Shown here one piece after another: positions 13,311 to 36,583 of a stretch of 64,000 nt of DNA. Location: assembly GCF_028641065.1 (NCBI RefSeq), contig NC_073389.1:28210001-28274000 (forward strand). Direction: 5' to 3'. Below the pieces are notes generated by a model. That model made no database searches and was not told where the DNA came from. It saw nothing but the letters and a program-made list of their open reading frames with translations. This DNA is from Leucoraja erinacea (lineage: Eukaryota). Each line of letters starts with the position of its first letter. Position 1 is the stretch's first letter. The translations under genes were made by a program, and so were the position numbers.

Positions 13311-14142
13311 CAAGGATGTATGGGTGAATGGATGATTGAGTGTGGGTATGTAAGTGGGTGAATGTTTATTGTGAGCGAGCTTGAGTGTGTGCGTTGTATG
13401 TTTTTTAGGTCAATGGAGATTGACAGATTATTGATTCGTGAGGGTGTCAAGGGTTATTGGAGAAGGCAGAAGAATGGGGTTGAGAAGGATAGATGAATCA
13501 GCTATGATTAAATGGTGTAGTAAACTTGATTGGCCGAATGGCCTACTTCTGCACCTGGAATTTATGAACTTATGCTGCCTGACCCGCCCAGATACTCCAG
13601 CATTTTATGTCTTTCTTTGTATAAACCAGCATCTGCAGTTCTCCATTCTTACACCATTCGCAATTCCCTGACTGGTGAAAGCCAGCATGCCAAAAGCCTT
13701 CTTCACCTGCTACCCGTCAGGTCACTATTAGGAAACTAAATTGAACTACAAGAACTGCAGATACTGGTTTACAAAAAAAAAACCCATTTGAAGCCCGAAG
13801 AAGGGTCTCGCCCCGAAACGTCACCCATTCCTTCTCTCCAGAGATGCTGCCTGTCCCGCTGAGTTACTCCAGCGTTTTGTGTCTATCATTGGAGTCCGCG
13901 GGGGGGGAGGGGCAACGTTTCAGGTCAGGACCATTCTTCGGACTGGTGCATCGTGCTACAAAGGCAAATCTCACTCAATTTACCTGCTGAACCGCCACAC
14001 ATTGCTCCTTATTTTACAGCATTGACCAGAAACTTACCTCGGCTTGATGCACTGCGCATGCTCCGGCGCTCCTGCTCTCTGGGAAGGTTCCCGTGTTCAC
14101 CCCCAAACTCCCAGCAGCCCCCGCGCTGCGCGGCGTTGCCAG

Positions 14143-14163
14143 CAAAGACCTCTAGGATCTTTG
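14143..14163. mobile_element. 21-bp TIR remnant (CAAAGA...GATCTTTG) flanked by 8-bp TSD gttgccag
   Basis: gttgccag-caaagacctctaggatctttg-gttgccag. Confidence 0.7.
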
Positions 14164-14224
14164 GTTGCCAGGGCGACGGGGCCGGGACACAGCGCCGGGT
14201 GCGACTCTGCATCACCCTGCTCAC

Positions 14225-14262
14225 CAAAGATCCTATAGCAGAGCTCTACTATAGGATCTTTG
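14225..14262. mobile_element. 38-bp palindromic TIR remnant flanked by 8-bp TSD ctgctcac
   Basis: ctgctcac-caaagatcctatagcagagctctactataggatctttg-ctgctcac. Confidence 0.8.
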
Positions 14263-14279
14263 CTGCTCACACTTCACCG

Positions 14280-14975
14280 GCCGGTGGGTGGGGGTGGGGG
14301 TGACTGAGAGATTGTTGTGTGTGTGGGTGGGTGTGATTGTGTGTGTGGGTGAGTGATTGTGTGTGTGTGTGGGTGTAATGTGTGTGTGTGTGGGTGAGTG
14401 ATTGTGTGTGTGGGTGGGTGTGGGTGTGATTGTGTGGTGGGGGTGAGTGATTGTGTGTGTGGGTGGGTGGGTGTGATTGTGTGTGGGTGGGGTGATGTGA
14501 TTGTGTGGGTGGGTGTGTTGTGTGTGTGTGTGTGTGTGTGGGTGGGAGTTGTTTGCGAGTGTGGGTGGGTGAGTGTGTGTGGGTGGGTGATTGTGTGTGT
14601 GTGTGTGTGGGTGGGTGGTTGTGTGNNNNNNNNNNNNNNNNNNNNNNNNNNNNNNNNNNNNNNNNNNNNNNNNNNNNNNNNNNNNNNNNNNNNNNNNNNN
14701 NNNNNNNNNNNNNNNNNNNNNNNNNNNNNNNNNNNNNNNNNNNNNNNNNNNNNNNNNTGTGTGGGTGTGGGTGGGTGGTTGTGTGTGTGGGTGGGTGTGA
14801 TTGTGTGTGTGGGGTGAGTGATTGTGTGTGTGGGTGGGTGTGATTGTGTGTGTGATTGTGTGTGTGGGTGTGATTGTGTGTGTGTGAGAGAGTTTGTGTG
14901 TGTGTGATTGTGTGTGGGTGTGTGGGTGTGTGGGTGTGATTGTGTGTGTGTGGGGGTGTGATTGTGTGTGTGTGT

Positions 14976-15038
<63 letters not shown>

Positions 15039-15890
15039 AGTGTGATTGTGTGTGTGGGTGAGAGTGTGATTGTGTGTGGGTGGGTGTGATTGTGTGGGTG
15101 GGGTGTGATTGTGTGTGTGTGTGTGTGTGTGGGTGTGTGTGTGTGGGGGTGTGTGTTTGTGGGTGAGTGTGTGATTGTGTGTGTGGGTGGGTGGGTGTAA
15201 TTGTGTGTGTGTGTGGGTGGGTGTGATTGTGTGTGGGTGGNNNNNNNNNNNNNNNNNNNNNNNNNNNNNNNNNNNNNNNNNNNNNNNNNNNNNNNNNNNN
15301 NNNNNNNNNNNNNNNNNNNNNNNNNNNNNNNNNNNNNNNNNNNNNNNNNNNNNNNNNNNNNNNNNNNNNNNNNNNNNNNNNNNNNNNNNNNNNNNNNNNN
15401 NNNNNNNNNNNNNNNNTGGGTGTGATTGTGTGTGTGGGTGTGTGTGTGATTGTGTGTGTGTGTGGGTGTGATTGTGAGAGAGTGTGGGTGTGATTGTGTG
15501 TGTGGGTGGGCGTGATTGTGTGTGTGGGTGGGTGTGATTGTGTGGGTGGGTGTGATTGTGTGTGTGTGGGTGTGATTGTGTGGGTGTGATTGTGTGTGTG
15601 GGTGGTGAGTGATTGGGTGTGTGGGTGGGGTGTGATTGTGTGTGTGGGTGAGTGATTGTGTGTGGGTGTGATTGTGTGTGTGTGGGTGGGTGTGATTGTG
15701 TGTGTTGGGTGGGTGTGATTGTGTGTGTGGGTGGGTNNNNNNNNNNNNNNNNNNNNNNNNNNNNNNNNNNNNNNNNNNNNNNNNNNNNNNNNNNNNNNNN
15801 NNNNNNNNNNNNNNNNNNNNNNNNNNNNNNNNNNNNNNNNNNNNNNNNNNNNNNNNNNNNNNNNNNNNNNNNNNNNNNNTGGGTGGGTGT
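14280..15890. repeat. GT-rich compound microsatellite/minisatellite (units like gtgtgattgtgtgtgtgggtgg) with three assembly gaps
   Basis: Directly visible. N runs at about 14626-14757, 15241-15416 and 15737-15879. Confidence 0.95.
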
Positions 15891-16267
15891 TCAGCGGTGG
15901 CAGATCGTGGGGAATGGCGGGTCACCAACTAAAACTGCCGCTGGTCACTCAGCACCAAAGATCCTGTGGCCTGTCCCGGGGAGCCCGGCGGTAGGATGAA
16001 GCACAAGCCCAATGCCGCCGTCTTCCTGTCTACTTCAGAATTCCAAAAGTGAGGAGAAATGACGGTAGATAGAAGCGAGAGCTGAAGGGACAACAACAGC
16101 TAAAGTGCTTGGCGAACATTGGCCGTTTGCTCACTGCATTTCATTAACAGTAAGGCATTATTTGTGTTTTTTGGAACTTGATTCCATTGGCATCTAAAAA
16201 GTTTCAGAAGTGATAAATCTGGCTATAAAATTTTAAAATCCCCCATGGTTCTCAAGTGGGGTTTTAC

Positions 16268-16481
16268 ATTTGGCCAGTTCATTGCTATATTTGGCCAGTT
16301 CATTGGCTATATTTAAGAGGGAGTTAGATGTGGCCCTTGTGGCTAAGGGGATCAGGGGGTATGGAGAGAAGGCAGGTACGGGATACTGAGTTGGATGATC
16401 AGCCATGATCATATTGAATGGCGGTGCAGGCTCGAAGGGCTGAATGGCCTACTCCTGCACCTAATTTCTATGTTTCTATGT
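16268..16481 (+). mobile_element. Short CR1 3'-end insertion
   Basis: gccagttcattggctatatttaagagggagttagatgtggccc...gaatggcctactcctgcacct...(ttctatgt)2. Same subfamily as the 30473 copy; ttacat occurs on both flanks. Confidence 0.8.
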
Positions 16482-17044
16482 TACATACAAAAAGAAAACG
16501 CCTCTGAAGCAAAATTTACAGCCAGATTTATCACCTCTGAGACTTTTTAGAGACGGTAATCAAAGAAGGGTATAACATTGAATTCTTCAATTTTAGGTAG
16601 TTATAAGTTAAAACATGTGATCCCATGCAATCTAATCTTCCAGAACAGCGTAGTATATGGAACCTTATCAAAGGCCTTGCTCTGCTCTCATCAACCACTG
16701 TGGCTACTTCATTAAAGACCTCAATCAAATTTGTGAAATACAATCTTCAAGATACAAAACCATGCTAACTATTCATAATTAACTCGTGTTCTTTTTCCAA
16801 GTGCATGCATATCTTATCTCAGGATTCCCTCCAGTAATGTTCCTACCACCGATGTCAGGATTACTAGTCTACAGCTCCCAGGTTTTTCATTGTAACCCTT
16901 CTTAAATAGAAGCATAACATTAGCCATCCTCCAATCTTCCTACACTTCACCCATGTCTAAGATAATTCATATATCTAAGCCAGGACTCCTGCAATTTCTT
17001 CCAGCTTCCCATCGTATCCTTGGATATATTTAATCAGACCCTGT

Positions 17045-17330
17045 TACTTTACTTTAGACTTTACTTTAGAGATACAGCATGGAAACAGGCCCTTTGGCCC
17101 ACCGAGTCCACGTCGACTAGCGATCACCCCCTACACTAGCACTATCCTACACACTAGGAACAATTTACAGTTTTACAGAGGACAATTAACCTATAAATCT
17201 ATGTCTGTGTGGGAGGAAACTGGAGCATCCGGAGAAAACCCACGGAATCACATGGATAATGTACAAACACCAAACAGACAGCACCCTTAGTCAGGATTGA
17301 ACCCAGGTCTCTGGCGCTATAAGGCAGCAA
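17045..17330 (-). mobile_element. tRNA-derived V-SINE (HE1-like, shark/ray type)
   Basis: Reverse complement of the element at 21081, with (agttt)-like tail, ggaaacaggcc, gtgggaggaaac core and gaacccaggtctctggcgc B-box region. Confidence 0.75.
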
Positions 17331-18449
17331 ACTAAACAGTATAACATGCAGGTACATTCATTTAAAATAAAATTCAGTGATTATTTCACATGATTTCTCA
17401 CTGTGTAAAGCTCAGTATCTGACCAATCTCTGTTTAACACGTTTGGTCTGCCTTGGGCATTGACTGAACTAAAAACCTAAATCAGGCTCAATTGTATCGT
17501 CACATTGGATTCAGTAAACTCACACATCTCTGCATTCAGGAGGCTGCCGTGATTGGAATCACGGGCTCTGAGACCAGAGTGGGTAAAGCGACCTGCGATC
17601 AATACCTAAGATGATAGCTCTTCTCAATTAAAAAAAAATTGAAACTTTTCACTCTAACCATGATGGCTAGAGCTTATTGCAAGGTGATCTAGGATCTCGC
17701 TAAGTAAATATTGTCATAACGCTCAGTTGAGGTCAAATGAAGAAGATATTCATTACATTGTTCAGTGGAGCCCATGGACGTGTCACTGAAAGCAGTGAAG
17801 AAAGCAATCTCCACACTTCATGTCCCCGTGTTTAATGAAGTGACTTTTAAATTACTTGAAATAACAGTTGATTTCTCTTTGTAACAAATGTCAACCGTGC
17901 TTCTAATGAAAGAGAAATCAATACACTTCTTTCTCTAACATTCCGTAATTCAGTTGACTTTTATTTTAAGTGGAAGACGCAAACATTGTCAGCTCCACCT
18001 GGCCTTCACCCAGAGTGACTGGGGAGTCCACAGTTGTGACAGGGGCCACAGTTTAAGAATAAAGGGGTAGGCCATTTAGGACTGAAATGAGGAAAAACCT
18101 TTTCACCCAGAGAGTTGTGAATCTGTGCAATTCTCTGCCACAGAAGACAGTGGAGGCCAATTCACTGGGTGTTATCAAGAGAGATTTAGCTCTTAGGGCT
18201 AACGTAATCAAGGGGAGAAAGCATGAACGGGGATACTGATTTTAGATGATCAGCCATGATCATATTGAATGGAAGTGCTGGCTTGATGGGCCGAATGGCC
18301 TCCTCCGGCACCTATTTTCTATGTTTCTGTTTCTATGACTGGTAGAAATGCATGCTCCATTCTTGAAGGTATCTCGTGCGGGATTTGAAATCCCCGTCAA
18401 GTCATAACGTGCCAATAAAGATGCTCTGCTTTCTTTCCATAGATTATCT

Positions 18450-18750
18450 GTTTTAGTTTAATGATACAGCACAGAAACAGGCCCTTCAGCCCACAGAGTC
18501 TGCACCGACCAACAATCCCTGCACACAAATACTATCCCACACACACTAGTGACAATTTACATTTGTACCAAGCCACATAACCTACAACCTGTACGTCTTT
18601 GGATAGTGGGAGGAAAGTGAAGATCTCGGAGAAAACCAATGCATGTCACAGGAAGAACGTATAAACTCCCTACAAACAACACCGGTCATCAGGAAGGAAC
18701 CGGGGTCTCTGGCGCTGTGAGGCAGCGACTCTACCGCTGCGCCATCGTAC
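18450..18750 (-). mobile_element. HE1-like V-SINE
   Basis: Same head, core and tail structure as the other copies. Confidence 0.75.
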
Positions 18751-18909
18751 TGCGAAGGTATCTCGTGCGAGATTTGAAATCCCCGTCAAGTCTTAATGAA
18801 CCAATAAAGATGCTCTGCGTTCTTTCCATAGATTATCTTAGTTGAGAGATACAGCGCGGAAACAGGCACTTCGGCCCACCGAGTCCGCACCGACCCCTGC
18901 ACACTAACG

Positions 18910-19200
18910 GGAGCCCCATGAATTTTATCCAAAGGAACGCGGCGTCATTAATACTTGGTCAAAACACAATTACATTTACTGAGGAATGTGGATCGATGCA
19001 TCGATGACACATTGTATAACTACTTGTTAACTACTGGCTGTTAACAAGTGCTAACAGTAGTAGTTAACAAATCATTTTTGTCTGATGGCCGGTCCAGTGG
19101 TTTTTATCCATGTTTGTTTAAAAAAAACGAGGCAAATTCGTATTTCTGTATGAAATACGGAAAATTAGCGCGGGGCCCAATCGGCTGAAGGCCGGCCCTG
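18910..19200. mobile_element. Probable hAT-type non-autonomous DNA transposon fragment
   Basis: Ends ...gaaggccggccctg (CAGGGCCGGC-type TIR) and has an internal inverted repeat ttgttaactact/agtagttaacaa. Confidence 0.4.
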
Positions 19201-21080
19201 CCCATGAGTATTCACTTGATGTTGTTAGTGAAATAAATATGTTGTGCATAGCATTGGAGGGGTCGGATTTGGTTCATTCTGTGGTAGGAATTCTGAATCG
19301 GGTATGTGAGTTACAGCTATACAGCAGAATCTTGTGCACAAAACTAACGACTGGTGTTTTAGTACAGCGAAATTCTGCACTGACATGGACTAAAGTAATG
19401 CCATGGTTGTAAAACAATCATAGCACTGGAAAAGAGGTCAAGAGATGCTGTGATTTACAATTGGAAATAATAATGTTTGAAAAACGCCATGGGGCTTGTC
19501 TAAACTGGCTACTCTTTATTCTTCTTACTCTGTTAAAAATTTGATGGTAGTGACATGCAAGAGGCTTTTTGATAGGCACATGGATATGCAGGAAATGGGC
19601 ATGGATCATGTGCAGGCAGAGGATATTAGTTTAACTTGGCATCATGTTCGGCATGGACCTTGTGGTTCTACAACTGAACATAAATTTCAATATTATTGAT
19701 CTTGCTGTGCATGTGGTCTTGCACTGTGATTTTGCACTGCCTGTTTCCTTATGCTGAGAGCATTTAAAATTATAATCCTGCAGTTAAGAATTAGAATAAT
19801 GTCCTGGGATACTCATCTTGTAAATGAACGTTTCAGCTTTCTATTTTATTACAAAATCATGAGGAGCATAGATAAAGTTATCAACCATAATCTTTCCTTA
19901 AGGATAGGCAAGTCTAAAATTAAAGGGCATAGGTGAGAGTGAAAAGATTTAAAAAGGACTTGAGGGGCTACCTTTCACACAGAGTCTTTTAAATGTCATA
20001 GTTGTACTTGTCTCTACTACTTCCTCTGGCAGCTCATTCCATATACAAATTGGCAGGCATACACTAGAACTATAGAATGCTGAGATAATTTATGTAACAT
20101 GTCATCATAGTTTAAATTGTAGTATTAAAATCTTAAATATTTTAATAGATTGGGTACAGTTACCTTGTGGAGGGTTAAGAATAAGGGGGACAAAGCTTTA
20201 AAATTAAAACTAGACTGTTTACAGCGGAATCTACAAAGTATTTTCTCTTTACTCAGAGAGTGGTAGCGGTGTGGAATGAACTTCCAGTGGAAGTGGTGGA
20301 GGCAGGTTCGTTGGTATCATTTAAAAATAATTTGGATAGGCATATGGATGAGAAGGGAATGGAGGGTTATGGTATGAGTGCAGGCAGGTGGGACTAAGGG
20401 AAAAAATGTTGTTCGGCATGGACTTGTAGGGCCGAGATGGCCTGTTTCCGTGCTGTAATTGTTATATGGTTATATGGTTATTTTCTGCACCTGATAGCAG
20501 AATTTTGAAATTTCTCTTCTGTTCTTTTCAAAAAGAAAAATTGATGCAAAATTGGAAAATTCCTTAATGTTCCTCAAGAGCCTCAGTGCCACCTCCTTCT
20601 TCATCTCAAACTGCCTTGGCATATTTGTATTCTCCACACCGATCTCGCTGTCTTCCAAGTCCTTCGCCTCGGAGAATACAGATGCAAAATACTTGTTTAG
20701 TATCTCGCCCACATCTTCTGACTCCAAACATCCAGACCTGTCCCTATTCAAAATAATCTTAAAATGAATGGTGCATGACCTGGTGAGACTCCAATACTTT
20801 GTGTCTTTTTTAAACGTGGAGTTGTGATCAATATCGGCAAATTCTTCTTCCACCGCAACACAAGTCACCTGGCAAGGCTTGTTTCACACCACAAGGTCCC
20901 TCCTTAAGTTGGTCTACCCACATACTGTTTCAGGCAATCTCTTTGGAAACACTTAACAAATTCTTCCTCCGTATTATCCACTTGTCCTGAGTAAGATCCT
21001 GTAAATATTGGGGAAGTTAGTCACCCACGTCAACAACCCTGTGGTTCTTGCATTGCCTTAGATGTCTCTCTGACCCCTTA

Positions 21081-21382
21081 GGGCGGCAGGCTGGCACAGT
21101 TGTAGAGTTGCTGACTTACAATGCCAGAGACCCGGGTTCGATCCTAACCAAGGCTGCTCTTTGTACAGAGTTTGTATGTTCTCCCCCTGACCTGTGTGGG
21201 TTTTCTCCGGGAGCTTCAGTTTCCTCCCACACTCCAAAGCCGTACAGGTTTGGATATTAATTGTCTTGGTAAAATTGTAAATTGTTCCTAGTGGATGTAG
21301 GATAGTGTGTGGGGAGATTGCTGGTCAGTGCCGATTAGGTGGGCCGAAGGGCCTGTTTCCATGCTCTAAACTAAACTAAAAC
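21081..21382 (+). mobile_element. HE1-like V-SINE, full length
   Basis: tRNA-like head ggcggcaggctggcacagttgtagag...gggttcgatcc (A/B boxes), central core, CR1-like 3' ggccgaagggcctgtttcc and (taaac)n tail. Confidence 0.8.
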
Positions 21383-23149
21383 TATCTCCAAGCTAAACTG
21401 GCTGGCAGGTCAGGAGAGGTCAATCCTCATCAATATTAGTAACAGCTGGGTCCTATTATTGCTTGGCCACTTGAACCTTGTCATCTACTCCCTCTAAAAG
21501 CCCAGCATTCTCACCAGAGAAGGGAGGGGGATGAGATAAGGAGGAAGGAGACGCTCCCGATTCGCAGGTTCGAAGAAGATTGAGCTGCTGGGGAAATAAC
21601 TCAAGACCACCAGCACCACCATGTGGTCAAGACTTGAAAGGCTGGGAAATAAGCCATGGAGACGCTGGGAAAGAACCTCTACCTGAGGCTAAGAGGAGCA
21701 TGGGCAAGCCTCATATCCCAGAACCTCTTCTTCATTACAGACACCAAGGGACAGCGTCCACACACACAGTCATAGACTGGCCGCCAGGATAATCCAGAGA
21801 CTGCCAGTCTCTTCAAGCTCAAAGCTGAGCCACCAGGAAGAAATCAATAATGTCAATACCTCCCATCAAAGCAAGGGTAAACTGCAGGAAGAAGTCTGGG
21901 TCACCATGCCTCCTCCTTCAAAGACCAGGACCAAGATGCTGGAACAAGCCCGAGATGGCTAGTCATCACATGTGCTCTGACAGTGAGGGACAGTGCCCCC
22001 ATGTGGTCCTAGACTTTCTTACCACTGTATGTAGAGTAAATTATGTAAGTTCACCTTACTGTGAGTGTCGGTGTGGTCACTGCTGTACCTGCGTCATCCC
22101 CAATGCCACAGCATCCTACCGTAATCTGTCTACATATCTGATACTCTATCTCCCCCTGGCTATTGAGTGGCCTGTAATATAATCCCATTAGAACAATTGA
22201 ACCTTTCTAATTTTTTTAGCTCAACCCACAATGCCGCAGTATATGTACCCTCCGAGTATCGCCGTGACATTCTCCCTGATTAGCAAAGCAACTCCTCCAC
22301 CTCTTTTACCTCCCTCTCCATCTCATCTGAAACATCGAAACCCAGGCTGCCAGTCCTGTCCCTCTCAAAACTAAGTTTCCGTAATGGCCATAAAATTATA
22401 ATTCCTAGAATGATCCAGGCTTCATCAGCTTTATCCACAATACACCTTGCATTAAAGTAAACACACTTCAGCTGTTCATTATCCCCATGTTCATGAACCT
22501 CTCCCTGCCTGTCCTTGCTTTGATAATGAAATCAGTCTTGATCTTATTAAATGGTGGGGCAGGCTTGAGCTGAGTGGTTTACTTCTGTTCCTAATTCGTA
22601 TGTAACCCATTTGCTTTCCCTTACAGTCACTTAATTACGAGCTGACCTGCTTTGCCATTTTAGCTAGTTGCAAACAAAAACAAATGTGTATAGTCGTTAT
22701 GACTCTTCTGAGCCATTCAGCAAAACTGGCGGATCTCAATTTCAACACTACTTTCCTACATGCTCCATAACCCTTGTCACAGCTAAACAACAACAATCTA
22801 TTTTTATCTTGTGATTTGGATTTCACAAGCGTCAGTGTAGAGAATTACAAACATTTTATGACAGCCAAATTCCTCCTTGTCTGTGTGATCTGCTCCATAG
22901 AAGTACACAACTTGAACAGTAATATTTCTAACCATAATCAGCAGGGAAGGGTCTGTCCCCCCAACTATGCACACGTTGGAAGGAATGAGATGGCCATCTC
23001 ATATTTACCCCAGAACTGTACAGCCTGCAGTCCTGACACAACAAACAGGACTTCAGTGAGTCTACCATGCACTGATCAGTCTTGGAACAGTACCCACAGC
23101 CACTGCTTTAATTTGAATGCTTCCCATGTGCTGAACATGATATGTACTG

Positions 23150-23690
23150 GTATTGATATTGATATGCCATTTATTGTCACTATACATGTACAGTGAAACT
23201 GAAAGCTGCTCGTACTCAGTGCATACATACAATTTAGCACAAAAAACAAGAAACAGAAAAACAAAAACAGAAGGGAGAAGGGGGGGGGGGGGGGGGGGGA
23301 TTGGTGCACAATTCTGCGGCGCTACATACATATATACATATATACAGATGGAAGTCCGGGTGTTGGGCAGTGAAGTCAGTGCATGTGTGAATTTGAATTA
23401 AGAGTAGTTATAATTCTCGGAAAGCAACTATTTCTGAGTCTATTTGTCCTGGATTTGATGCACCTATAGCGCCTTCCAGAGGGCAGCAGGTCGAACAGTC
23501 CAAACGCAGGATGGGAGCTGTCTTTGATGATCTTCTTTGCCCTGCTAAGGCAGCGGGAGGTGTAGATATCCATCAGGGAGGGGAGAGGGCAACCAATGAT
23601 CTTCTGCGCTGTCCTAGTTACCCTCTGAAGCCTCTCCCTGTCTGCCATGGTGCAGCTGCCATACCATGCTGTAATGCAGTATGTCAGCAG
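23150..23690 (-). mobile_element. Rex1/Babar-type LINE 3' end
   Basis: LTYCITAWYGSC...LQRVTRTAQKIIGCPLPSL...SHPAFGLFDLLPSGRRYR...RLRNSCFP, with a (atatca)n tail. Confidence 0.75.
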
Positions 23691-24009
23691 GACCATTTGG
23701 ATTCACACTTGACGTTCCAATTCAAACAATTTTGATATACCAGAATCTTGTGCCACCGCCTACAGAAAGAGCTTGTATCATCTGGTCCAATTTCCAATTA
23801 GCCCCATTCTAATGGTGCACAAAGGAGCATCTTTACATGTGGACATTGAACTTCAGATGCTTGAAATTTAGAAGAAAACAAGAAATGTTCCGCATGTCGG
23901 TCAGCATCTAAGGAAAAAGGAACAGCATTCATGTTTCAGGTCTGGGATCGCCTGAAGAAGGGTTATTAACTTGAAAAGTTACCTTTCTCTACAAGATGCT
24001 GTACAATCT

Positions 24010-24360
24010 GCTGTGCCGCGATTCAGCATGGCCCTTGGCGCGTAATCCTTCATCTTGGAATGTGTCGTCTGCAACTCCTTACGCTTGAAGAACAGCATAT
24101 TTCCTACAGACTAAAGTGCCTCTTTCACTAAGATGAATATCCAGCAATGATGAATGTGTGTCTTGGTATATGTTCCTGGAAGGATTCGTGGAGCACAAAG
24201 ATACAGGATACTTAACGGCTCAGGATCTACATCAAGAAACACCATTTCATCCCTTTTCAAACCTTCTTGGCATACACACAGTCTAGATGGAATGGGTGAC
24301 TGTTGCAAATGAAAACATTTCACTCCAAGTCACTCGGGGGGTGCACTGCACTGAATATCC
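24010..24360 (-). mobile_element. Degraded L1/Tx1-type LINE C-terminal fragment
   Basis: LPGTYTKTHIHHCWIFILVKEAL*SVGNMLFFKRKEL...HSKMKDYA resembles, from memory, the ORF2 end of Tx1-clade elements; contains stops. Confidence 0.5.
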
Positions 24361-24846
24361 TGCAGGAAAATGCACAGTCAGAGACTAAGAGCATGGAAAC
24401 TTACCATAGGTCCGGGAAGACTTTCATGAAGCACTCATTTTTGCACTAATTCTATCCATTTCATACTTCACACATTTTCATGGACTTCCCCCTGCACCCT
24501 ACCCCCCTTCCCCTTATTCGATCACTGGGGCAATTTACAGTGCCTAACAACCTACCACCTTGCACGTCTTTGGACTGTTATAGAAAACCAGAGCACCTAG
24601 GAAATACTGCACAGTCACAGTAAGAACATGCAGACTCCACAAAGAGAGGACTCAAACCCAGGTTGCTGGACCTGTTAGGCTGTAGCAAGTGGCTGTAGCT
24701 CTGTCCTGAACAAAACTGATACATTCTGCCCAATGATTCCTCAAGTAGACTGTCAAAGAAGAAAAATGATGGATGTTGTGAAGCGTAGCCCAATTACTGC
24801 ACAGTCTGGGATCACCATCAACAACTCTGCAGATGGGAGATTTTAG

Positions 24847-25245
24847 CAAAGATCCTATAGCGGAGCAAGATAGGCCACTCCTGCTAAATGCAATGGGCTG
24901 ACGTGTAGTACGCAACGGTGCGGAACGTGGGCCTTTTTTTCATCCATTTCAGTAATCCTACCCGACTTGTAGTGTAATCAACGTTGCGGGGAAACAGTTT
25001 GTGTTAATAAATTATAATTCTGAAAATGAGGAGAAGATTTTTACCGAATAACTTTTATTTTTATGAGGATATTTCCGTAACCGGCTTCCGTCTCTGCACT
25101 AGTATCTTTGCTCCGCTATGGGACATTTGGTGCAGAGACGGAAGCCGGTTGCGGAAATGGGGCCAAAAGTTACCCTTAAATCTGCCCATGACCGTACTAC
25201 GTCTTTTTCGCCGAGTGATCTATCTTGCTTGCTCGAGGATCTTTG
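24847..25245. mobile_element. 399-bp MITE with CAAAGATCCT TIRs and perfect 8-bp TSD (gattttag); P-element- or hAT-type
   Basis: gattttag-caaagatcctatagcggagcaagatag ... ctatcttgcttgctcgaggatctttg-gattttag. Internal inverted repeat accggcttccgtctctgcac/gtgcagagacggaagccggt. Confidence 0.85.
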
Positions 25246-27895
25246 GATTTTAGCATTTGCTCTGCAATTAGCACTCTCTCTGCAATTAACATTTCAAAGT
25301 GGCAAGCTTTGCTCAGCCAAACGTATTCGGAACATTGGGATGTCCTGTGACTCATTGTCTGCAGTTACTACATCAATTTTCACCTGCTGAGTGTACTGAG
25401 TACCACCTCAAAGGGTGATGATGTTTATAGCTGAAAGGAATTGTCTGTATTCCCCAGACAATTACGACTGAACTGAGTGTTAAAACGACTGAACTGATAC
25501 CATTTTAACTCATTGATTGCCTTGTGGCCGCACAGACTGAAATGTGTACTCCTCTAATTTTGGAGAAATAAGTTGCCACTAATTTGCCTTCCAGAAAACA
25601 GACTTCAAACTGCAAGCCTAAAAAACATAGTTCAGACTATATTCTTAGCAGTGTAACTATTGAGTAGAATGGTTTAGGAATTCAATTTCAAAAATCACTA
25701 AAACTAACCGAGAGCAAAAAAAACCAAAGGAGTGAAACAAAGGGCAAACGCATGCCCTCTAGTAATTCACATTTCCACTGGGAGAAAATTTCTGACTACC
25801 TTTATCAATACCTATCATTAACCTTACAAAAATCTATCAGGACTCAACTTAGCCTCTGACGTTCCAGATAAAACAATCCAATTGTTAGCTCGTAAAACAG
25901 CTTCTCACTATGCAACCCGTTGAAACCTACCTCGGGTGTATCTGTGTGAAACTTGTTTTCTTCTCTCTGTGATTGGGTGGGTTACCTCTGGATGCTTCAG
26001 TTGGGAGGCTAATTAGCTGCTATAAATTGGCCCTAGTATGTAGTGTGGGGAGAATTGATGGGAATGTTGCACAGAAAATAAGTGGGGAAATAGGGCGTAA
26101 TGTGTTTCCAATGTTGTAAGGAAGTATGTAAAGTAAAAAGATGAATAGAATGTTCTGCTTTATGTCAAAGATTATAAAACAGTACAGGAACTGGCTCTTT
26201 AGATCTGCACATGATCCATATCCCTCCATTCAATGCATATTCATGAGTCTAACTAAAATCCTCTTAAATGCCAGTATTGTATGTATTTCCACCACCACCC
26301 ATGGCAGCACATTCCAGCTACTTCCCACTCTCTTTGTAAAATGAACCTGCCATTTTAAATGTTTCCACTTACGCTAAACCTCTGCTCTCTGGTAGTTAAC
26401 ATTTCCACTCCTGGAGACAGATTCTGATTTATCAATGCCTATCATTAACTTTACAAAAATCAAAGTCTCAACTTGGCCTCTGACATTCTAGAGAAAACAA
26501 TCCAAATTTGTCAAACCTTAAAAGTAATATTCTCTAATCCAAGTAACATCCTGGTTATGGGAGACACAAAATACTGGAGTAACTCAGCGGGCCAGGCAGC
26601 ATCTCTGGATAAGTGACGTTTGCGGGTTGGGACCCTTCTTCGATGTGATTGTATTGTCCCACCAATGTACATCGGATGCTGTAGATGAGGTGAGAGGAGG
26701 TGCATGTGAAACACTGTGTCACCTGGAAGGTCCCTGGAAGGAAATAACGGAGGTATAAGGACGCATTGACACCGTGGGCTGAGAGGCCTGTTTTTTACGC
26801 CATACTGATGATGTATGTATTATGTCAATTGTGTTTCCTATTGGATGTGGTACTTTAGACAGAAGCCTGTAGGTGGTACTGGTTTACACAGAATCCACCA
26901 GGAGGTAACACAGTTATCGAGTCATGCAGCATGGAAACAGGCTCTATGGCTCAAATTCGGCCTTACTGACGAGGGCACCCCACCCACTCTAGTCCCATTA
27001 TCTTGTACCAGGCCCATATGCCTCTAGATTGTTCCTATCCATGTGCCAGTCCAAATGCCTTTTAAATGTTATTACTGTACCTCACAGCTACTTCCTTAGT
27101 TTATTTTGTAGATACAGTGTGGAAACAAGCCCTTCAGCTAACCAAGTCCATTCTGAGTATTGATCACCCGTACACTAGTTCTATGTTATCCCACTGTTAC
27201 ATCCGATGAACTAGGGGTAATTTACCGAACTGTCTTAAGCAGAGAAATTTGAGGTACTGAAGATGTACTTGAGGTACGGAAATAATTGAGGTACTGAAGA
27301 TGATTCAAGGGGTTGACAAAACTGGCTGGAGAGAAACTATTCATTGTACTGAGTCCACAGCAAAGGCTCCCATAACCTCAAAATTCAAGCAAGAAGTTGA
27401 GGAATGGACATCACATGAAGGATAGGGATAATTGGGAACACTCTCCCAAACCATCCTGTGGAAATGTTTGTTATTTATTTTTGTTCGGCTAGGGTCTGAA
27501 GAATTACAGATAAAGATGCGCATTTGGAGTTAAAATACAGAACAGCCATGTTGTAATAAATTAGAGAGGCTGCATGACTAATTCCTGTAGTTCAATTCTC
27601 AAACTGGCAATAATTTGTTTAATGATTTAAGGCATTGTTTATTGGGGGTTAAGGATCATGCAGCACAGTTCAAATTCAGTAACCATCAACAACTGTCTGG
27701 AGAAGGAGATAAGACCTTTCAATTGCAAATACCAACATTTGGTAGCAATTAAATGCTCTCAGCAGGTGGGAATTGGTGGAAGCTGATTTGCGCCTCCTAG
27801 TCTCAAGGATATTTGAGACAAAATCTATTTGGCTGAGGGAAGGAAGCTATCTGAGTCTCAAACTCCTCCCCAGTATGAGGGGCTGCTCCTAAAAC

Positions 27896-27919
27896 CAAAT
27901 ATCCTATAGCAGATCTTTG
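27896..27919. mobile_element. 24-bp TIR remnant flanked by 8-bp TSD cctaaaac
   Basis: cctaaaac-caaatatcctatagcagatctttg-cctaaaac. Confidence 0.72.
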
Positions 27920-28077
27920 CCTAAAACTCTTAATTGAAATGCTAATGACAAAGTGAGAGAGAGATGAAATCACCATTCAGCAGAGTTGTTGAAGCTAATC
28001 TCAGACTGTAACTGGAGCTGGGCCTAGGCGCACACTGTCCTTCATTACACACCTCGTGCTTTGTGCTGGAGTCGGGG

Positions 28078-28360
28078 ATGGCTCGAGGTTCCCTCATTAT
28101 CTGTTTAGCTATGATTTTGTTTTCCCCCCTCAGCCTGTCTGAGCTACAGGACCCCCAGCTTCAGGAAAAGGCCTTTTTAAAAGCTTTGGGTTTAACAAGC
28201 CGGCCTCAACCCTCTGATCCAAGGCCTGTCCCAGTTCGACTGTGGAAGATGTTCCAGAGGAGATCCCGATCTCTCAGCGAGGTCGATTCTGGAGAGGACA
28301 TATGCAGAATGGATGAGCTGGGGGTAGAGGGAGACACCCTCCGCCATCTCCCTAATTTGG
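28078..28360 (+). CDS. Vg1/DVR1 (GDF1/GDF3 family) TGF-beta ligand, exon 1 (signal peptide and start of prodomain)
   Basis: ATG at 28078 in context gggATGG. Hydrophobic signal peptide MARGSLIICLAMILFSPLSLS, then FLKALGL...PVPVRLWKMFQRR...CRMDELGVEGDTLRHLPNL(G) |gtaag (phase 1). Confidence 0.9.
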
Positions 28361-28783
28361 GTAAGAGCCCATTATTGATGTGGTATGGAATGAAAGCTGT
28401 GGCGTTGAGGGAGGTACGGGTAGCTGGGATTAATGTGAGAGTTGCTGGGGATCTTGTTTCTGGGGTGGGAGTATCAGTCATTACAAAGGTGCTTCAGAGG
28501 GGTTGAACCTGGTGGTTGTTTGGGAGAAGGGTCTCGATTCCTGGAGACAAGTGTGCCAGTTACTAATGTTTGTTTCCTGCGGTGAATGTGCCGGTTACTG
28601 GGGTCGTGGTCTACAGGGGCCGGGGAGTCACGGGTTCCAGGGTCCATGTGTGATAGTCAGTGGGGTCGCAGATGTTGGGGGGGGGGTCCAGGCTTGAGAT
28701 CAGATTGGGTCTGTGGGACCCAGACTACACATCTCGCTGACCAGCTGTTCTGATAATTGCGCTTTGACCATCTGTTTCGTCAG

Positions 28784-29583
28784 GTGACTCAGACCCCGAA
28801 CTGGAATCGTCTCTTTCCTCTTGTGTGCGGAGGCAGCTTTACTTCAACTTGTCCGTGCTGGAAAACATGGAAGAGCTGACACTGGCTCAGCTGGAACTCT
28901 CCCTCCTTGGCGACCCCTATCCCTTCCCTGGTGTAGCCACAGTCTGCACTTTATCCATCTGGAGTTTGGGGGAGCCCTCCAGCTCCAGGCAGGAGCTTGT
29001 GGCTCTGCAGTCCTTTCAATCACTGCGTGGCTCCCTTTACTTCAACCTCACTCATATCTCCAGAGCATGGAGACACCAGCACAGCAATCAGGGGGCACTC
29101 CTGGAGATAGGCAGCACCTCGATTGGGGATCACCAGGAGCTTCACCCAGCTTGCAGCAGAATTGCCCAGGATCTGCACATCTCCCTGTTGGTGGTGACTC
29201 TGAATCGGGAGAAATGCAAAGCGTCCAGAAGGAAGAGGAGCTCCTTTCAGCTGCCACTTGCATTCAGCCGTGTCTGCAAACGTAGGAGGCTCCATATCCA
29301 GTTCAAGGATGTCGGTTGGCAACATTGGGTCATTGCCCCTCAGGGCTATATGGCCAATTATTGCCATGGAGAGTGTCCTTACCCACTGAGTGAGAGTCTG
29401 AATGGTACCAACCACGCCATTCTGCAAACGCTAGTACATTCCACTGACCCCGGGCAAACCCCACAACCCTGCTGTGTCCCCATTAAGCTCTCCCCCATTT
29501 CCATGCTCTATTATGATAACAATGAGAATGTCGTTTTGCGCCATTATGATGATATGGTGGTGGATGAATGTGGTTGCAGGTAG
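28784..29583 (+). CDS. Vg1/DVR1 (GDF1/3 family) exon 2: rest of prodomain, RRKR furin site and mature cystine-knot domain; 360 aa in total
   Basis: Acceptor tctgtttcgtcag|, in frame with ORF 28825..29583. RRKR is followed by [38 protein letters not shown]...[14 protein letters not shown]...[38 protein letters not shown], with all 7 cysteines. It closely resembles zebrafish dvr1/gdf3 and Xenopus Vg1. Exact orthology is not determinable by eye. Confidence 0.95.
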
Positions 29584-29827
29584 GATATTTTCCCTGGTGA
29601 AGATGCGTTTTAATTTGTAATTTTTAAGACCTAGTGCTTTTGGCAATGGTACCTTCCCCCACGGTGAACTTCTGTCTAATGTTTTGTTTTAGGTGGATGG
29701 TGGTGTGAATTGAATTTCATCCACCTGAATCGACATCTAGCATCATCCTCAAACATGTCCCCTTAAGTTAATTGTCGAATTAAATCATTTGATTCAAAGT
29801 TGTAATTATAATTGGAACTTGATTCAC

Positions 29828-30038
29828 AATAAACGTTTTGTTGTATTTCTTCAGCATAATGAACCGAAGTGTTAACGTTCACGTTAATGTACACATAAGA
29901 GAACTAGTGCCAATTGGCACACTGAATATTTCCTGGATGTTTTTGTTTTATTTCAGATATCCTGTATGAAGTGATTTTGCTTTAGTAACAGTACGGTCTT
30001 TGAGCAATTAGTAACTGTGGCAAGTTTATTGAAATAAA
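29828..30038 (+). terminator. Candidate polyadenylation signals of the Vg1-like gene
   Basis: AATAAA at 29828-29833, followed by U/GU-rich cgttttgttgtattt, and a second AATAAA at 30033-30038. Confidence 0.55.
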
Positions 30039-30472
30039 AGCAATTATTCCTCATTACCTATAGTTTGCAAGATTTTTCCTTTCAAGTACTAATCTTGTGC
30101 GATTTCCAAAAGTTGTTATTGAATTAACTTAGAGCATTAATTCATTTTGTGCATTCCGCTTAATACTAACTACACGATTAATGGTCTCGACCCGAAATGT
30201 CACCTATCCATGTTCTCCAGAGATGCTGCCTGATCTGCAGAGGTACTCCAGCACTTTGTGTTCTTTGTTATCAGAAATTCAATGTTCCATATAATAAATA
30301 CATTTAAAAGGGGGCAATTTTGTTTAGCTTTAATCTGGGCTAGCCTATTAGTATCTCAATTAAAGAATGGTCCTTAGGTTCTTTATCGGAACACCCTCGG
30401 GATGAGAAACAGGTGAGAAATCTGTTAAATGGAAAGATTTGAGAAGCTGGAATTATTCTCCACTGAGCAGAG

Positions 30473-32382
30473 ACATAGAAACATAGAAAATAGGTGCAGG
30501 AGTAGGACATTCGGCCCATCGCGCCTGCACCGCCATTCAATATGATCATGGCTGATCATCCAAAACAGTATCCCAACCCTGCCTGCTCTCCATAACCCCT
30601 GATCCCTTTAGCCACAAGGGCCACATCTAACTCCCTCTTAAATATAGCCAATGAACTGGCCTCAACTACCTTCTGTGGCAGAGAATTCCACAGATTCACC
30701 ACTCTCTGTGTGAAAAATGATTTTCTCATCTCGGTCCTAAAAGACTTCCCTCTTATCCTTAAACTGTGACCCCTAGTTCTGGACTTCCCCAACATCGGGA
30801 ATAATCTTCCTGCATCTAGCCTGTCCAACCCCTTAAGAATTTTGTAAGTTTCTATAAGATCACCCCTCAATCTTCTAAATTCTAGCGTGTACAAGCCAAG
30901 TCTATCCAGTCTTTCTTCATATGAAAGTCCTGCCATCCCAGGAATCCGTCTGGTGAACCTTCTCTGTACTCCCTCTACGGCAAGAATGTCTTTCCTCAGA
31001 TTAGGAAACCAAAACTGTACGCAATACTCCAGGTGTGGTCTCACCAAGACCCTGTACAACTGCAGTAGAACCTCCCTGCTCTTATACTCAAATCCTTTTG
31101 CTATGAATGCTAACATACCATTTGCTTTCTTCACTGCCTGCTGCACCTAAATGCCTACTTTCAATGACTGGTGTACCATGACACCCAGGTCTTGTTGCAT
31201 CTCCCCTTTTCCTAATCGGCCACCATTCAGATAATAGCCTACTTTCCTGTTTTAGCCACCAAAGTGGATAACCGCACATTTATCCACATTATACTGCATC
31301 TGCCATGCATTTGCCCACTCACCCAACCTATTCAAGTCACCTTGCAGCCTCCTAGCATCCTCCTCACAGCTAACACTGCCCCCCAGTTTCGTGTCATCCG
31401 CAAACTTGGAGATGTTGCATTCAATTCCCTCATCCAGATTATTAATATATATTGTAAATAGCTGGGGTCCCAGCACTGAGCCTTGCGGTACTCCACTAGT
31501 CACTGCCTGCCATTCTGAAAATGACCCGTTTACTCCTACTCTTTGCTTCCCTGTCTGCCAGCCAGTTCTCTATCCACATCAATACTGAACCCCCAATACC
31601 GTGTGCTTTAAGTTTGCATACTAATCTCTTATGTGGGACCTTGTCGAAAGCCTTCTGAAAGTCCAGATATAACACATCCACTGGTTCTCCCTTATCCACT
31701 CTACTAGTTACATCCTCGAGAAATTCTATAAGATTCGTCAGACATGATTTACCTTTCATAAATCCATGCTGACTTTGTCCAATGAATTCACCACTTTCCA
31801 AATGTGCTGCTATTCCATCTTTAATAACTGACTCCAGAATTTTCCCCACCACCGATGTTAGACTAACTGGTCTGTAATTCCCCGTTTTCTCTCTCCCTCC
31901 CTTTTTAAAAAGTGGGGTTACATTAGCTACCCTCCAGTCCTCGGGAACTACTCCAGAATCTAAAGAGTTTTGAAAAATTATCACTAATGCATCCACTATT
32001 TCTGCGGCTACTTCCTTAAGTACTCTGGGATGCCACTTATCTGGCCCTGGGGATTTATCGGCCTTTAATCCATTCAATTTACCTAACACCACTTCCCAGC
32101 TAACCTGGATTTCACTCAGTTCCTCCATCTCATTTAACCCCCAGTCCCTTGCTATTTCCGGCAGATTATTTATGTCTTCCTTAGTGAAGACAGAACCAAA
32201 GTAGTTATTCAATTGGTCTGCCATGTCCTTGTTCCCCATGATCAATTCGCCTGTTTCTGACTGCAAGGGACCTACATTTGTTTTAACTAATCTTTTCCTC
32301 TTCATGTTTTAACTAATCTTTTCCTCTTCATGTTTTAACTAATCTTTTCCTCTTCATGTTTTAACTAATCTTTTCCTCTTCA
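30473..32382 (-). mobile_element. Relatively young 5'-truncated CR1 LINE (about 1.9 kb of ORF2 RT plus 3' UTR)
   Basis: ORFs 31496..32305, 31252..31503 and 30556..31146 carry NYRPVSLTS, YLDFQKAFDKVPH, GVPQGSVLGP, KFADDTK and LEYCVQFW. Few disruptions; (ttctatgt)n tail at 30473. Confidence 0.95.
32279..32382. repeat. Four exact tandem copies of 26 bp (tgttttaactaatcttttcctcttca) at the CR1 5' junction
   Basis: Copies start at 32279, 32305, 32331 and 32357. Confidence 0.95.
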
Positions 32383-33407
32383 TAAAGGAGGAAAGGGACG
32401 CATAAGGGAAGTGAATGGAGAAGGTTAATTTTCCCAGGAACCGGGAGAAATCGGTTATTTTTTTTCAAATAAGGCCATGGCACCAGCACTTGTGTCTAAT
32501 TTCAAAGTTGACTCCTCTGACTGCTGCACTGATTTCAAAGTTGACCTCTGTGCCTGCAGCACTGCATGGGGAGAAAGGGACATCTGACAGCAAAGGTCTC
32601 CGTCAGCATTGTGACAATGAACCTCTGACAGGGCAGCACTGCACTGGAGGGGCACCTCCATGCCAGCTCCTTAAACACTGCAGTGAATGTCGATTTAGTT
32701 TATATGGCCAGTCTCAGGAGAGCCCATAACCTTGTGGTTCTGACCATGACTGAGGCAAACATTTCCTTATTTCCCTCTCTCTCTCTCTCTTTCTCTCTAA
32801 TCTAATCTTACAGTTTGATGCAGTCCTTCATCTGATCTTGGAAGCTAGAATGGGAAAACTGCTTTGCCCCGCACATGGAGTGATTAGATTCTGCACCGAT
32901 CCAGAGGAATGCCATTATTCACATATTCATCACAGTGACCTCTACAGGGTCAGAACAAGAAAAGGGGTGGAGAGCTATGTTCTTCGATTGATTGCTTATC
33001 ACTAGAGGATTATATAATGGTGTTTAATAAGCAGGGTAAAATATAAATCATACGCTGCTCTAATCTATTAAAGTCAACACCAGTTTCAGCTACAGAGCTT
33101 TTATGACAATTTCAAATCTATGCTGTGCCTCATGGTTGATAGGAAGTACATTACAGCCATACGTATTGTTTGCTGATTAAATTAACAAAGGGACAAAAAG
33201 ATTATTTGGAGGCAAGGTGACATGCATTTTCAAGAGCCAATGTCAATGAGGTGGATGGTAGAGCTATATTCACTGGAGCCACTATTTCACAACCGACCTG
33301 GAAACCGAATGTCACTCATTACAGACTTTTACACATCAGAAGCAGGACAGAACATAGCTGATCGTCCTTTTCTCTTCATCTCAGGGAATATAACTCCTCT
33401 TAAGTGT

Positions 33408-33700
33408 AGTTTAGTTTATGCTTAGTTTAGGGATACAGTGTGGAAACGTCCTTTTGCCCACCGTGTCCATGCCGATGATCGATCGCCTATACACTAGTTT
33501 TATCCTATACACTACGGACAATTTACAGAAGCTACAAACCTGTCTGTATATCTTTGGAATGTGTGAAGAAACCAGAGCACCTCGTAGAATACCCATATGT
33601 TCACAAGGAGAATGTACAAACTCCATACAAACAGCACCTGTAGTCACAATCGAACCCGGGTCTGAGCTGCACTCTATGGTAGCAACTCTACTGCTGCACA
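33408..33700 (-). mobile_element. HE1-like V-SINE
   Basis: (agttt)n tail, core, and tcgaacccggg B-box region. Confidence 0.72.
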
Positions 33701-34244
33701 ACTGTGCTTTTGGCTTTTTGTCATTAATCTGAGAGGACAGGCAAGGTCTCCATTTATGGCCTTCTGAATATTGATACCTTGGGCTGTGCTACAGTTGCTA
33801 TGTGATGTTATCAGACTTCTGACTGGTCTTTGAATCCATTTCACACAGATGGCGAGAAAGCATACCTTGAAAATCATCCCATCAATCCATCAGTCCACCA
33901 TCAGTCTGAAGAAGGGTTTCGGCCCGAAATGTTGCCTATTTCCTTCACTCCAAAGATGCTGCTGCACCCGCTGAGTTTCTCCAGCATTTTTGTGTACCTG
34001 GCGAGAAGGCAGCTTCACTGATGCATAAAGTGAGCATTTTTATTTTGTTTCTCCAAGGGATGTAGGCTCAGGTGGCTAAGGCAGCATTTTTTGACCATAC
34101 TTAATTGCTTTCCAATGAGGTGGCCAATGTAGAAGACAGATATAAGTTTGGGGCCATGGGTGAAAAGTATTGCATAGGGCAGTGCTGTGAAACTGCTTTC
34201 TGAGACAGTTTGTGGAGCTGTAACATGACATTCTGCACTCTAGA

Positions 34245-34975
34245 TAATAGACAATAGGTGCAGGAGTAGGCCATTCGGCCCTTTGAGCCAGCACCGCCAT
34301 TCAATGTGATCATGACTGATCATCCACAATCAGTACCACGTTCCTGCCTTCTCCCCATATCCCCTGATCCCTTTAGCCACAAGGGCCACATCTAACTCCC
34401 TCTTAAATATAGCCTGAATCTATAGAACATTGGAAAATGATCACCAATGCGCTCACAAAGTCTAGAGCCATTTCCTTAAGTACCCTGGGATGCAGACCAT
34501 GAGGTCCTGGGGATTTATCAGCCTTCAGTCCCATCAGTTTACCCAACACAATTTCCTGCCTAATGTGGATTTCCTTCAGTTCTTCCATCACCCCACATCC
34601 TCTGGCCACTACTACATCAAGAAAATTGTTTGTGTCTTAGTGAAGACGGATCCAAAGTATCTGTTCAACCCATCTGCCATTTCCTTGTTCCCCATAATAA
34701 ATTCACCCTTTTCAGTCTTCAAGGGTTCAACTTTGGTCTTAACTAATTTTTTCCTCTTCACATACATAAAGAAGCTTTTACTATCCTCCTTTATATTCTT
34801 GGCTAGCTTCCCTTCGTACCTCATCGTATCTCCCCGTATTGCCTTTTTAGTTATCCTTTGTTGCTCTTTAAACGTTACCCAATCCTCTGGCTTCCATCTT
34901 TGCCATGTTGTACTTCTTTTTTATTTTTATACTGACATCCCTTGTCAGCCACGGTCGCCCCTTACTCCCCTTGGA
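34245..34975 (-). mobile_element. CR1 LINE fragments (3' end joined to an internal ORF2 segment)
   Basis: YEGKLAKNIKEDSKSFFMYVKRKKLVK and KSPGPHGLHPRVLKE motifs, with 3' UTR at 34245-34412. Confidence 0.85.
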
Positions 34976-36425
34976 ATTATGAGAGACCAAGCCCGAGGGA
35001 GCATAGCAACAGAGGAGGTGGGAGGGAGGAACTTTAGCATTTTTCAGCTTGAAATTGTGCAATCTGGTGCATACTGTAGCGAGTCTTTTAACTTACACTT
35101 GAATGCAACATTTATGCTTTAATTTGGATTAGCTAAGAATAAGGTTAGGCTAAATGATATTCCTAATTACATTGCACAGTAAAGCCAGGCTCTGATCAAC
35201 AGGTGCTGCACATGAATGACTTTAGCATATTCATGTATGGAAATCAGATTATAATTCATGCTGTTATGCATATATATAGATAGAAAAACATAGAAACAAG
35301 GCTAGTGATGTTCAGTCTTAACAAATCTTCCTCTTCTGCACCAAGGGATAGCAAATCCCTGAAAAATATACGATCATACACAATAATAATGCAAACATTT
35401 TATGCAAGGCTCTTCCTATTGTTTGGACAAAATCACTTATTAATGCTTTATAACAGTTAAGTTACTTTAAGACCATTTCAGAAATTATGGCAGTCAATGA
35501 ACAATACAAATTAAAAGCAAACTAAAATAAAAAATAACATATTCCCTTTCCTGACTATTTTATAAGTATTTGAATGCTGTTTACAGAACAAAGCGATATT
35601 ATCTCAAGAATCAAAATGAGGAAAGAGGGAGCAAGTTTGCTTAAATGGTAATTCTAAGCCCATTCAGATCTGCATAGTCAGAATTACACAACATGCACAG
35701 GGCTTTTGGCCCAGTTTGTCCATACTGATCAAGTTGGCATTCTGGGCTAGTCCCATTTGCCTACATTTGGCTAATGTCCCTCAAAACCCAGCATATTGCA
35801 GAATAGAGGAAAACAGACTTGCAATAATCTTACATAATGAAACAGTTTTGCAACAGAGGGACTTCTACAACCTGAGCCAACATTCCATTCTTTTTGGTCC
35901 AGCAATAATCTACAATCTTTGTAGTGAGATGCCAATACCAAACTTGTGGGAGGATGAACAACTTCAGTAATGGAAACTGGTGTATTGCCTAACCCATACA
36001 GAAATAATCAGACCCATTATAATAGATCTTTAAAATAATTATCCACTCACTTTGTTTCGAATACATATGACCAGGGCCCTGTACAAGTGCAGACGGACCT
36101 CTTTGCTCCTATACTCAACTCCTCTTGTTATGAAGATTCACCTCATGCGTGTAGTTTGTGTGGGGATTCACCTGAGACATTCTGCAACCTTCAAACCTGG
36201 GGGCAGGACTGTACACTGAAGCTGAAGCAACAGCACCACCCTCCCCATAACAAAAGCCACTGTGTGCGTGTGTGTGAAAGCTGGTTCTCACCTGGTTAGT
36301 CCCCTCTCCAGCTGCTTCATCGCCACCATGTTGTCGGCGGCTGCACATGGACCAAGACGCGTCGTCACTGCCGTCAACCGACGTGCTTCCCCACAGACCA
36401 CACGGTTGTAAAGCTCGCTGGTAAT

Positions 36426-36457
36426 CAAAGATCATAGAGCGGAGCCCATGATCTTTG
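36426..36457. mobile_element. 32-bp TIR remnant with imperfect 8-bp TSD (ctggtaat/ctgacaat)
   Basis: caaagatcatagagcggagcccatgatctttg. Confidence 0.6.
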
Positions 36458-36484
36458 CTGACAATGTGGTGCAAAGAGACAAAA

Positions 36485-36583
36485 ACGCTGATCACAGAAT
36501 TTCTCACGACAGAGCATGAGAAATTCTGTGATCAGCGTGAGAGCGTAAGAATTGCCTGAAATGCGTGAGAGTTGGCAGCCCTG
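36485..36583. mobile_element. hAT-like fragment containing a perfect 22-bp inverted repeat
   Basis: acgctgatcacagaatttctca (36485-36506) / tgagaaattctgtgatcagcgt (36517-36538); ends agttggcagccctg. Confidence 0.5.

Follow-up and report, generated by a model that had tools for sequence, protein, structure and literature searches.

What kind of event leaves behind a palindrome-like insert of a few tens of base pairs that consists of nothing but the two ends of a transposable element? This question is raised by a stretch of the genome of the skate Leucoraja erinacea (NCBI RefSeq assembly GCF_028641065.1, contig NC_073389.1, positions 28,210,001 to 28,274,000 of the forward strand), which carries four such inserts, designated here E1 to E4, together with a 399-bp miniature inverted-repeat transposable element (MITE). 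Throughout, "the window" refers to this whole stretch of 64,000 nt and not to an individual feature, and positions are counted from its first letter. An original prediction, made without database searches, had taken the four inserts for excision scars of a vertebrate family related to the Drosophila P element. Our results point in the same direction, and we estimate at about 0.6 the probability that E1 to E4 are footprints of excision, sealed by end joining, and that the transposase responsible makes cuts staggered by about 20 nt and is probably of the P type.

The letters at the predicted positions bear out all five elements, none of which is assigned to a strand. E1 (14135-14171) is a 21-bp fused-end remnant at 14143-14163, flanked by exact 8-bp target duplications (GTTGCCAG) at 14135-14142 and 14164-14171. 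E2 (14217-14270) is a 38-bp near-perfect palindrome at 14225-14262 with exact 8-bp duplications reading CTGCTCAC, and E3 (27888-27927) is a 24-bp remnant at 27896-27919 between exact 8-bp duplications reading CCTAAAAC. In E4 (36418-36465), the 32-bp remnant at 36426-36457 is flanked by CTGGTAAT and CTGACAAT, which are alike at 6 of 8 positions. The non-autonomous MITE (24839-25253) occupies 399 bp at 24847-25245 and has exact 8-bp duplications, GATTTTAG. The duplications are thus exact in four of the five elements (E1, E2, E3 and the MITE), and the claim that each of the four inserts is framed by its own 8-bp direct repeat holds exactly for E1 to E3 and at 6 of 8 positions for E4. Position 7 of the duplication is A in all five elements and position 2 is T in three of the five. 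Assembly gaps touch none of the five; the nearest begins 355 nt past the second duplication of E2 (14270 to 14626), and all that the gaps affect is how far the CpG-rich DNA surrounding E1 and E2 extends.

E1 to E4 are composed solely of pieces of the two inverted-repeat ends that bound the MITE, as had been predicted, and their derivation from a family that includes the MITE is thereby borne out. The best splits give arms of 6 to 7 and 14 to 15 nt in E1, 18 to 20 and 20 to 18 nt in E2 (whose halves differ at 1 of 19 positions), 15 to 17 and 9 to 7 nt in E3, and about 20 and 12 nt in E4, where the arms derive from a variant of the terminal inverted repeat (TIR). All eight arms are at most 20 nt long, against a TIR of about 33 nt in the MITE, and the predicted limit of about 20 nt from each end agrees with this observed range of 6 to 20 nt. 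The length of E2 equals 19 plus 19 nt, and E2 could equally represent two 20-nt tails whose overlap is the self-complementary dinucleotide GC found at positions 19 and 20 of the TIR. Because the four junctions are all different, the inserts appear to be independent repair events and not copies of one small element. Within the range of 10 to 400 bp, the lengths of family members in the window are 21, 24, 32, 38 and 399 bp, with none at 39 to 398 bp; under a uniform length distribution, the probability that four of five lengths fall at or below 40 bp is about 1e-4.

Chance palindromes beside chance direct repeats can account for these sites with next to no probability. A motif-free scan of the window for exact 8-bp direct repeats around inserts of 10 to 60 bp with an exact 6-nt terminal inverted repeat returned two sites, E1 and E2; 20 Markov shuffles yielded not a single site. 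A family scan (ends with at most one mismatch to the 7-nt termini, duplications with at most two mismatches, inserts of 10 to 400 bp) returned seven sites, against a mean of 0.63 and a maximum of 4 in 200 shuffles, and five of the seven were E1 to E4 and the MITE. The two further candidates were rejected, one (52928-52971) as an A-rich coincidence and the other (58457-58719, 263 bp) for want of any alignment to the MITE. A search of the window for single ends (14 nt, at most three mismatches) gave 13 matches with about 6.8 expected, which apart from the five elements we regard as noise; for one possible left end at 15956, no partner end was found. A hairpin at 36488-36535, 30 bp downstream of E4 and 48 bp long with perfect 19-nt arms and a 10-nt loop, was rejected as a family member, having neither a target duplication nor any likeness to the family TIR.

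The MITE is the only long member of the family in the window within the scanned range of 10 to 400 bp. Its TIR, which starts with CAAAGATCC, is imperfect; the likeness of the two ends extends over about 33 nt and is interrupted by one indel. It is short and non-coding, with stops in all six frames, and it combines TIRs and a target duplication with the high copy number described below, as is expected of a MITE. No THAP exon was found in its six frames. The interior holds a 29-nt inverted repeat (25071-25099 and 25130-25158, 97% complementary), whose loop contains two head-to-tail 19-nt units that resemble the right TIR end at 15 and 16 of 19 positions, respectively. The length of these units equals that of the longest scar arm. 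Two motifs, one of the GTAGTACG type and one reading ATGGGC, recur near both ends of the MITE (24900-24913 and 25190-25202), inverted and at unequal distances from the TIRs, and may be transposase-binding sites.

Which type of transposase could have left such arms? The family has much in common with hAT elements (Ac, hobo, Hermes and Tol2), namely, an 8-bp duplication, short TIRs starting with CA/TA..G, and MITEs that are abundant in fishes. The CAAAG terminus fits the YARNG-type motif of hAT ends, and the duplication pattern (A at position 7, T at position 2) fits a hAT target pattern. The footprints of hAT elements, however, alter bases of the flanks and are not known to retain 6 to 20 nt of each TIR, whereas each end of the element is represented in E1 to E4 by 6 to 20 nt. 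The hAT, Transib and MULE enzymes form hairpins on the flanking DNA and release the whole element end, so that hAT excision keeps no element letters at the donor site (PMC5499845). The anatomy of E1 to E4 is what end joining at long single-stranded tails of TIR sequence on the donor DNA would be expected to give, and not what would be expected of hAT excision with its hairpins on the flanks. The YARNG-type motif is quoted for the P superfamily as well (PMC2820524), and the CAAAG terminus therefore does not discriminate hAT from P. The duplication pattern likewise fits the target motif of the fly P element, GTCCGGAC (PMC2577343). P elements prefer targets that are palindromic and rich in GC.

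In Drosophila, the P transposase cleaves the 3' strand at the element end, and its cut in the 5' strand lies 17 nt within the TIR of 31 bp; insertion produces 8-bp duplications and is biased toward promoters (PMC7776569). The donor ends therefore carry identical, non-complementary 3' tails of 17 nt, and the end joining of these tails frequently uses microhomologies inside them (PMC2895639). The skate family resembles this system in its 8-bp duplication, in the length of its TIR (about 31 to 33 bp in the two systems), in TIR pieces between the duplications whose length is limited by that of the tail, in joins at microhomologies within the tails, and perhaps, as the setting of the scars suggests, in insertion at promoters or open chromatin (PMC7776569, PMC2895639). 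It differs in an arm limit of 19 to 20 nt instead of 17, in an unrelated TIR sequence and in its vertebrate host; furthermore, the skate scars are old and fixed in the germline, whereas those of the fly are laboratory excision products. That the four small inserts contain only TIR ends and that none of their eight arms exceeds 20 nt is what a long stagger predicts, as far as sequence can tell.

These observations suggest the following course of events. A high-copy cut-and-paste family of skates, with an 8-bp duplication, an imperfect TIR of about 33 nt and 399-bp MITEs, would have inserted at the four sites in the window and later been excised. Of the two strands, its transposase would have cut one at the element end and the other within the TIR, about 20 nt from that end. 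Each flank would thereby have kept a single-stranded 3' tail of TIR sequence, and the two tails, identical and non-complementary, would have been united by cellular end joining. E2 could then represent an untrimmed tip-to-tip join via the self-complementary GC at positions 19 and 20, giving 38 bp, and E3 a join at a 2-nt microhomology after trimming, giving 24 bp; heavier trimming would have given the 21 and 32 bp of E1 and E4, respectively. The end product in each case would be both copies of the duplication around a short palindrome-like scar. It is from the scars that we infer the former presence of full elements at E1 to E4, the length of the stagger, and an enzyme of the P type (a THAP domain plus an RNase-H-like transposase).

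Among vertebrates, the closest parallels come from fishes. Zebrafish Pdre2, with its enzyme zfTHAP9, is a vertebrate P-type system that makes 8-bp duplications and whose enzyme excises its own element (bioRxiv 10.1101/2024.03.22.586318). Its 13-bp TIRs start with CATACCTG and are accompanied by distant 12-bp subterminal repeats, in contrast to the skate family, and the accessible part of that account describes flanking deletions, not fused-TIR scars, and gives no stagger (bioRxiv 10.1101/2024.03.22.586318). Izanagi of medaka is a non-autonomous, multicopy P-like element with a 27-bp TIR and an 8-bp duplication that is located in a gene promoter (PMC2820524). Izanagi is tied to P by remnants of THAP exons, which the skate MITE lacks, and its footprints are not described in the accessible part of that report (PMC2820524). 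Short non-coding elements mobilized by P transposases are also found among insects (BuT5 of the Drosophila repleta group and P-derived MITEs of Anopheles gambiae), where, unlike the skate MITE, they are tied to known autonomous P elements (PMC3698922, PMC1562414).

Comparison with related organisms bears on the age of the elements. Six organisms had matches in a search of sequencing runs, and contigs of four of them (X16, X19, X3 and X7) were compared with the window over 24300-28000. In all four runs, the MITE has a summed contig depth of between 3e4 and 1.2e6, thousands of times that of its flanks (12 to 69 in adjoining bins), and although these depth figures are not copy numbers, the MITE family is very high-copy in all four organisms. 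Single-copy contigs from the left flank enter the first 14 to 27 nt of the MITE in all four runs, and single-copy contigs leave its right end in three of the four listed runs. The MITE thus occupies the same site in all four organisms, and its insertion is therefore older than their split. The most distant of the four diverges from the window by about 5.7% in the contig over 27166-27887; for the contig next to the MITE, the figure is about 5.5%.

The pattern at E3 is different. In X16, the closest organism, a contig crosses E3 and continues to 28000 with 8 differences in 821 positions and no gaps, and E3 is present. In X19, X3 and X7, the matching of single-copy contigs ends at 27887, immediately ahead of the first copy of the E3 duplication, and the contigs extend beyond this point by 2273, 799 and 548 letters, respectively. 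A high-copy element at E3 is unlikely in these three organisms: at the MITE, contigs are broken by such an element, and the same would be expected at E3. An empty site at E3 in X19, X3 and X7, with the joint placed leftmost, is the simplest reading. If this is right, E3 is a derived, lineage-specific insertion that arose after the split from these three organisms at about 2% divergence.

The enzyme itself was sought in the window. Of the 100 open frames of at least 90 amino acids, 98 were scanned, two overlapping proline/serine-rich frames at 2263-2896 being excluded, and none of the 98 matched a P or hAT transposase family. The matches obtained were to RF-1, PCRF, TGF_beta, Na_K-ATPase, RGS, Pkinase, RVT_1, a Tc3-type helix-turn-helix (HTH), GRP and Vps55. 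A pattern search of the window for THAP zinc fingers (C2CH) gave three unconvincing hits, with no AVPTIF-like box and no THAP-like exon. No transposase gene was found in the window, and the link from the TIR to a P enzyme is a putative one.

A stagger of this length could also belong to an enzyme other than P, and E1 to E4 would then be long-stagger footprints of another superfamily with 8-bp duplications. Zisupton, Merlin and Novosib, for which we know of no established cleavage chemistry, may serve as examples of such superfamilies. In favor of this explanation, the window contains nothing that identifies the transposase, and both the duplication length and the CAAAG terminus are shared among superfamilies. 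We consider it unlikely all the same, since a TIR of about 33 nt, an 8-bp duplication and sites in CpG islands match P, which, according to the accessible part of PMC7776569, is the only characterized eukaryotic transposase known to leave tails this long. The arms could, alternatively, owe nothing to the stagger and be ordinary internal deletions: after excision by any cut-and-paste enzyme, hAT included, a few bases on each side would be copied from the sister chromatid and the nascent ends joined (synthesis-dependent strand annealing plus end joining). After excision of fly P, the commonest outcome is indeed repair synthesis that stops short and is then completed by end joining (PMC2895639), and the 399-bp MITE, too, arose by deletion. 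Such a process, however, does not explain why all eight arms are at most 20 nt long when the TIR continues to about 33 nt, and the window is without any family element of 39 to 398 bp; this makes internal deletion quite improbable here.

It is also conceivable that no excision took place and that the palindromes are mobile micro-elements which inserted at their present size. Each insert has its own target duplication and E3 resembles a lineage-specific gain, both of which such elements would explain. Against them stand the lengths (21, 24, 32 and 38 bp) and junctions, which all differ, arms of 6 to 9 nt that are shorter than any plausible transposase-binding end, and the general consideration that ends 21 to 38 bp apart cannot be paired by looping. 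Insertion at the present size is therefore very improbable, and excision from longer elements by a long-stagger, probably P-type enzyme is the reading that we prefer.

Several observations nevertheless weigh against this preferred reading. No P or hAT transposase was matched among the frames scanned in the window, and it is from scar geometry that the assignment to P is deduced. Three features, namely the length of the duplication, the terminal CAAAG and the T at position 2 with A at position 7, fit hAT as well as P. The sample is small, with four scars and eight arms. Among the sites compared, none was seen to pair a full element in one organism with a scar in a different one, and excision is accordingly deduced rather than observed; the empty site at E3 is likewise deduced, from the points at which the contigs stop matching. 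The MITE, moreover, is located in CpG-poor DNA, and insertion of the family is thus not confined to promoters. Of the original claim of P-type excision scars, the TIR-end remnants of the MITE family, the differing junctions and the arms of at most 20 nt all stand, and it is the membership in the P superfamily that stays putative.

How far the scars mark promoters depends on their setting. CpG-island-like segments make up 7,100 of the 63,549 read bases (11% of the window), and E1, E2 and E4 lie within such DNA, E4 in a patch at 36151-36650. The probability of three of four scars falling in CpG-island-like DNA is 0.005 (binomial), or 0.035 when E1 and E2 are counted as one locus (two of three), and clustering of scars at promoters within the window is suggestive only. 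The DNA at 14.1 to 14.3 kb is CpG-island-like, adjoins three assembly gaps (14626-15879) and is located upstream of the recognized exons of MTRF1 on the minus strand (the RF-1 exon at 882-1178 and the end of the PCRF domain at 3580-3873); it is plausibly the MTRF1 promoter. E3 lies in CpG-poor DNA, 159 to 182 nt upstream of the start codon, at 28078, of a DVR-1/Vg1 gene on the plus strand. This gene is an intact two-exon gene of the DVR-1/Vg1 type (28078-29583), whose closest named proteins come from three skate species and form one 90% cluster; one RefSeq model has a different upstream first exon.

A bolder version of the proposal would hold that the skate germline recently harbored an active P-type transposase of the vertebrate kind, cutting with a stagger of about 20 nt, after the window's lineage had split from three of the four relatives, that the element homed to promoters and was often excised again, and that promoters now bear many short palindromic scars, some of them perhaps regulatory. 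Such scars would serve both as a natural readout of the cleavage geometry of THAP9-type enzymes in vertebrates and as a fossil map of open chromatin in the germline. This broader scenario is possible, although we regard it as doubtful.

P-type transposases of vertebrates are known mainly from the domesticated THAP9 and a few fish families (Pdre of zebrafish and Izanagi of medaka). In a literature search whose coverage took in few subscription journals, we found no paper that describes the skate TIR, reports P-type elements from skates or documents naturally occurring P-type footprints in the genome of any vertebrate; nor did the literature examined, in its accessible parts, contain a report on the cleavage geometry of a vertebrate P-type enzyme. 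If the P-type reading is true, a P-type family would have been mobile in the germline of cartilaginous fishes, and its stagger, about 20 nt as opposed to 17 in flies, would be readable directly from sequence. The scars would mark former sites of elements, here mostly in CpG-rich 5' DNA. Target choice, excision frequency and the repair of breaks in the vertebrate germline would then become countable in genomes that have already been sequenced.

The remainder of the window contains further genes and repeats. The first exon of a Na/K-ATPase beta gene is located near 39.2 kb and a gene combining RGS and kinase domains at 53.8 kb. A fragment of a Tc1/mariner-type transposase (HTH_Tnp_Tc3_2) is found at 10570-10967, and fragments of the reverse transcriptase of long interspersed nuclear elements were matched in 2 of the 98 frames. 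The window has a 21-nt tandem duplication at 25465-25485 that the contigs of the four other organisms all lack. A repeat of extreme abundance has its core at 26562-26609, where the summed contig depth in every one of the four runs is about 5e6 to 1.8e7. This segment probably represents the conserved core of a short interspersed nuclear element of elasmobranchs. Elsewhere in the four genomes, some contigs join this repeat to the left end of the MITE.

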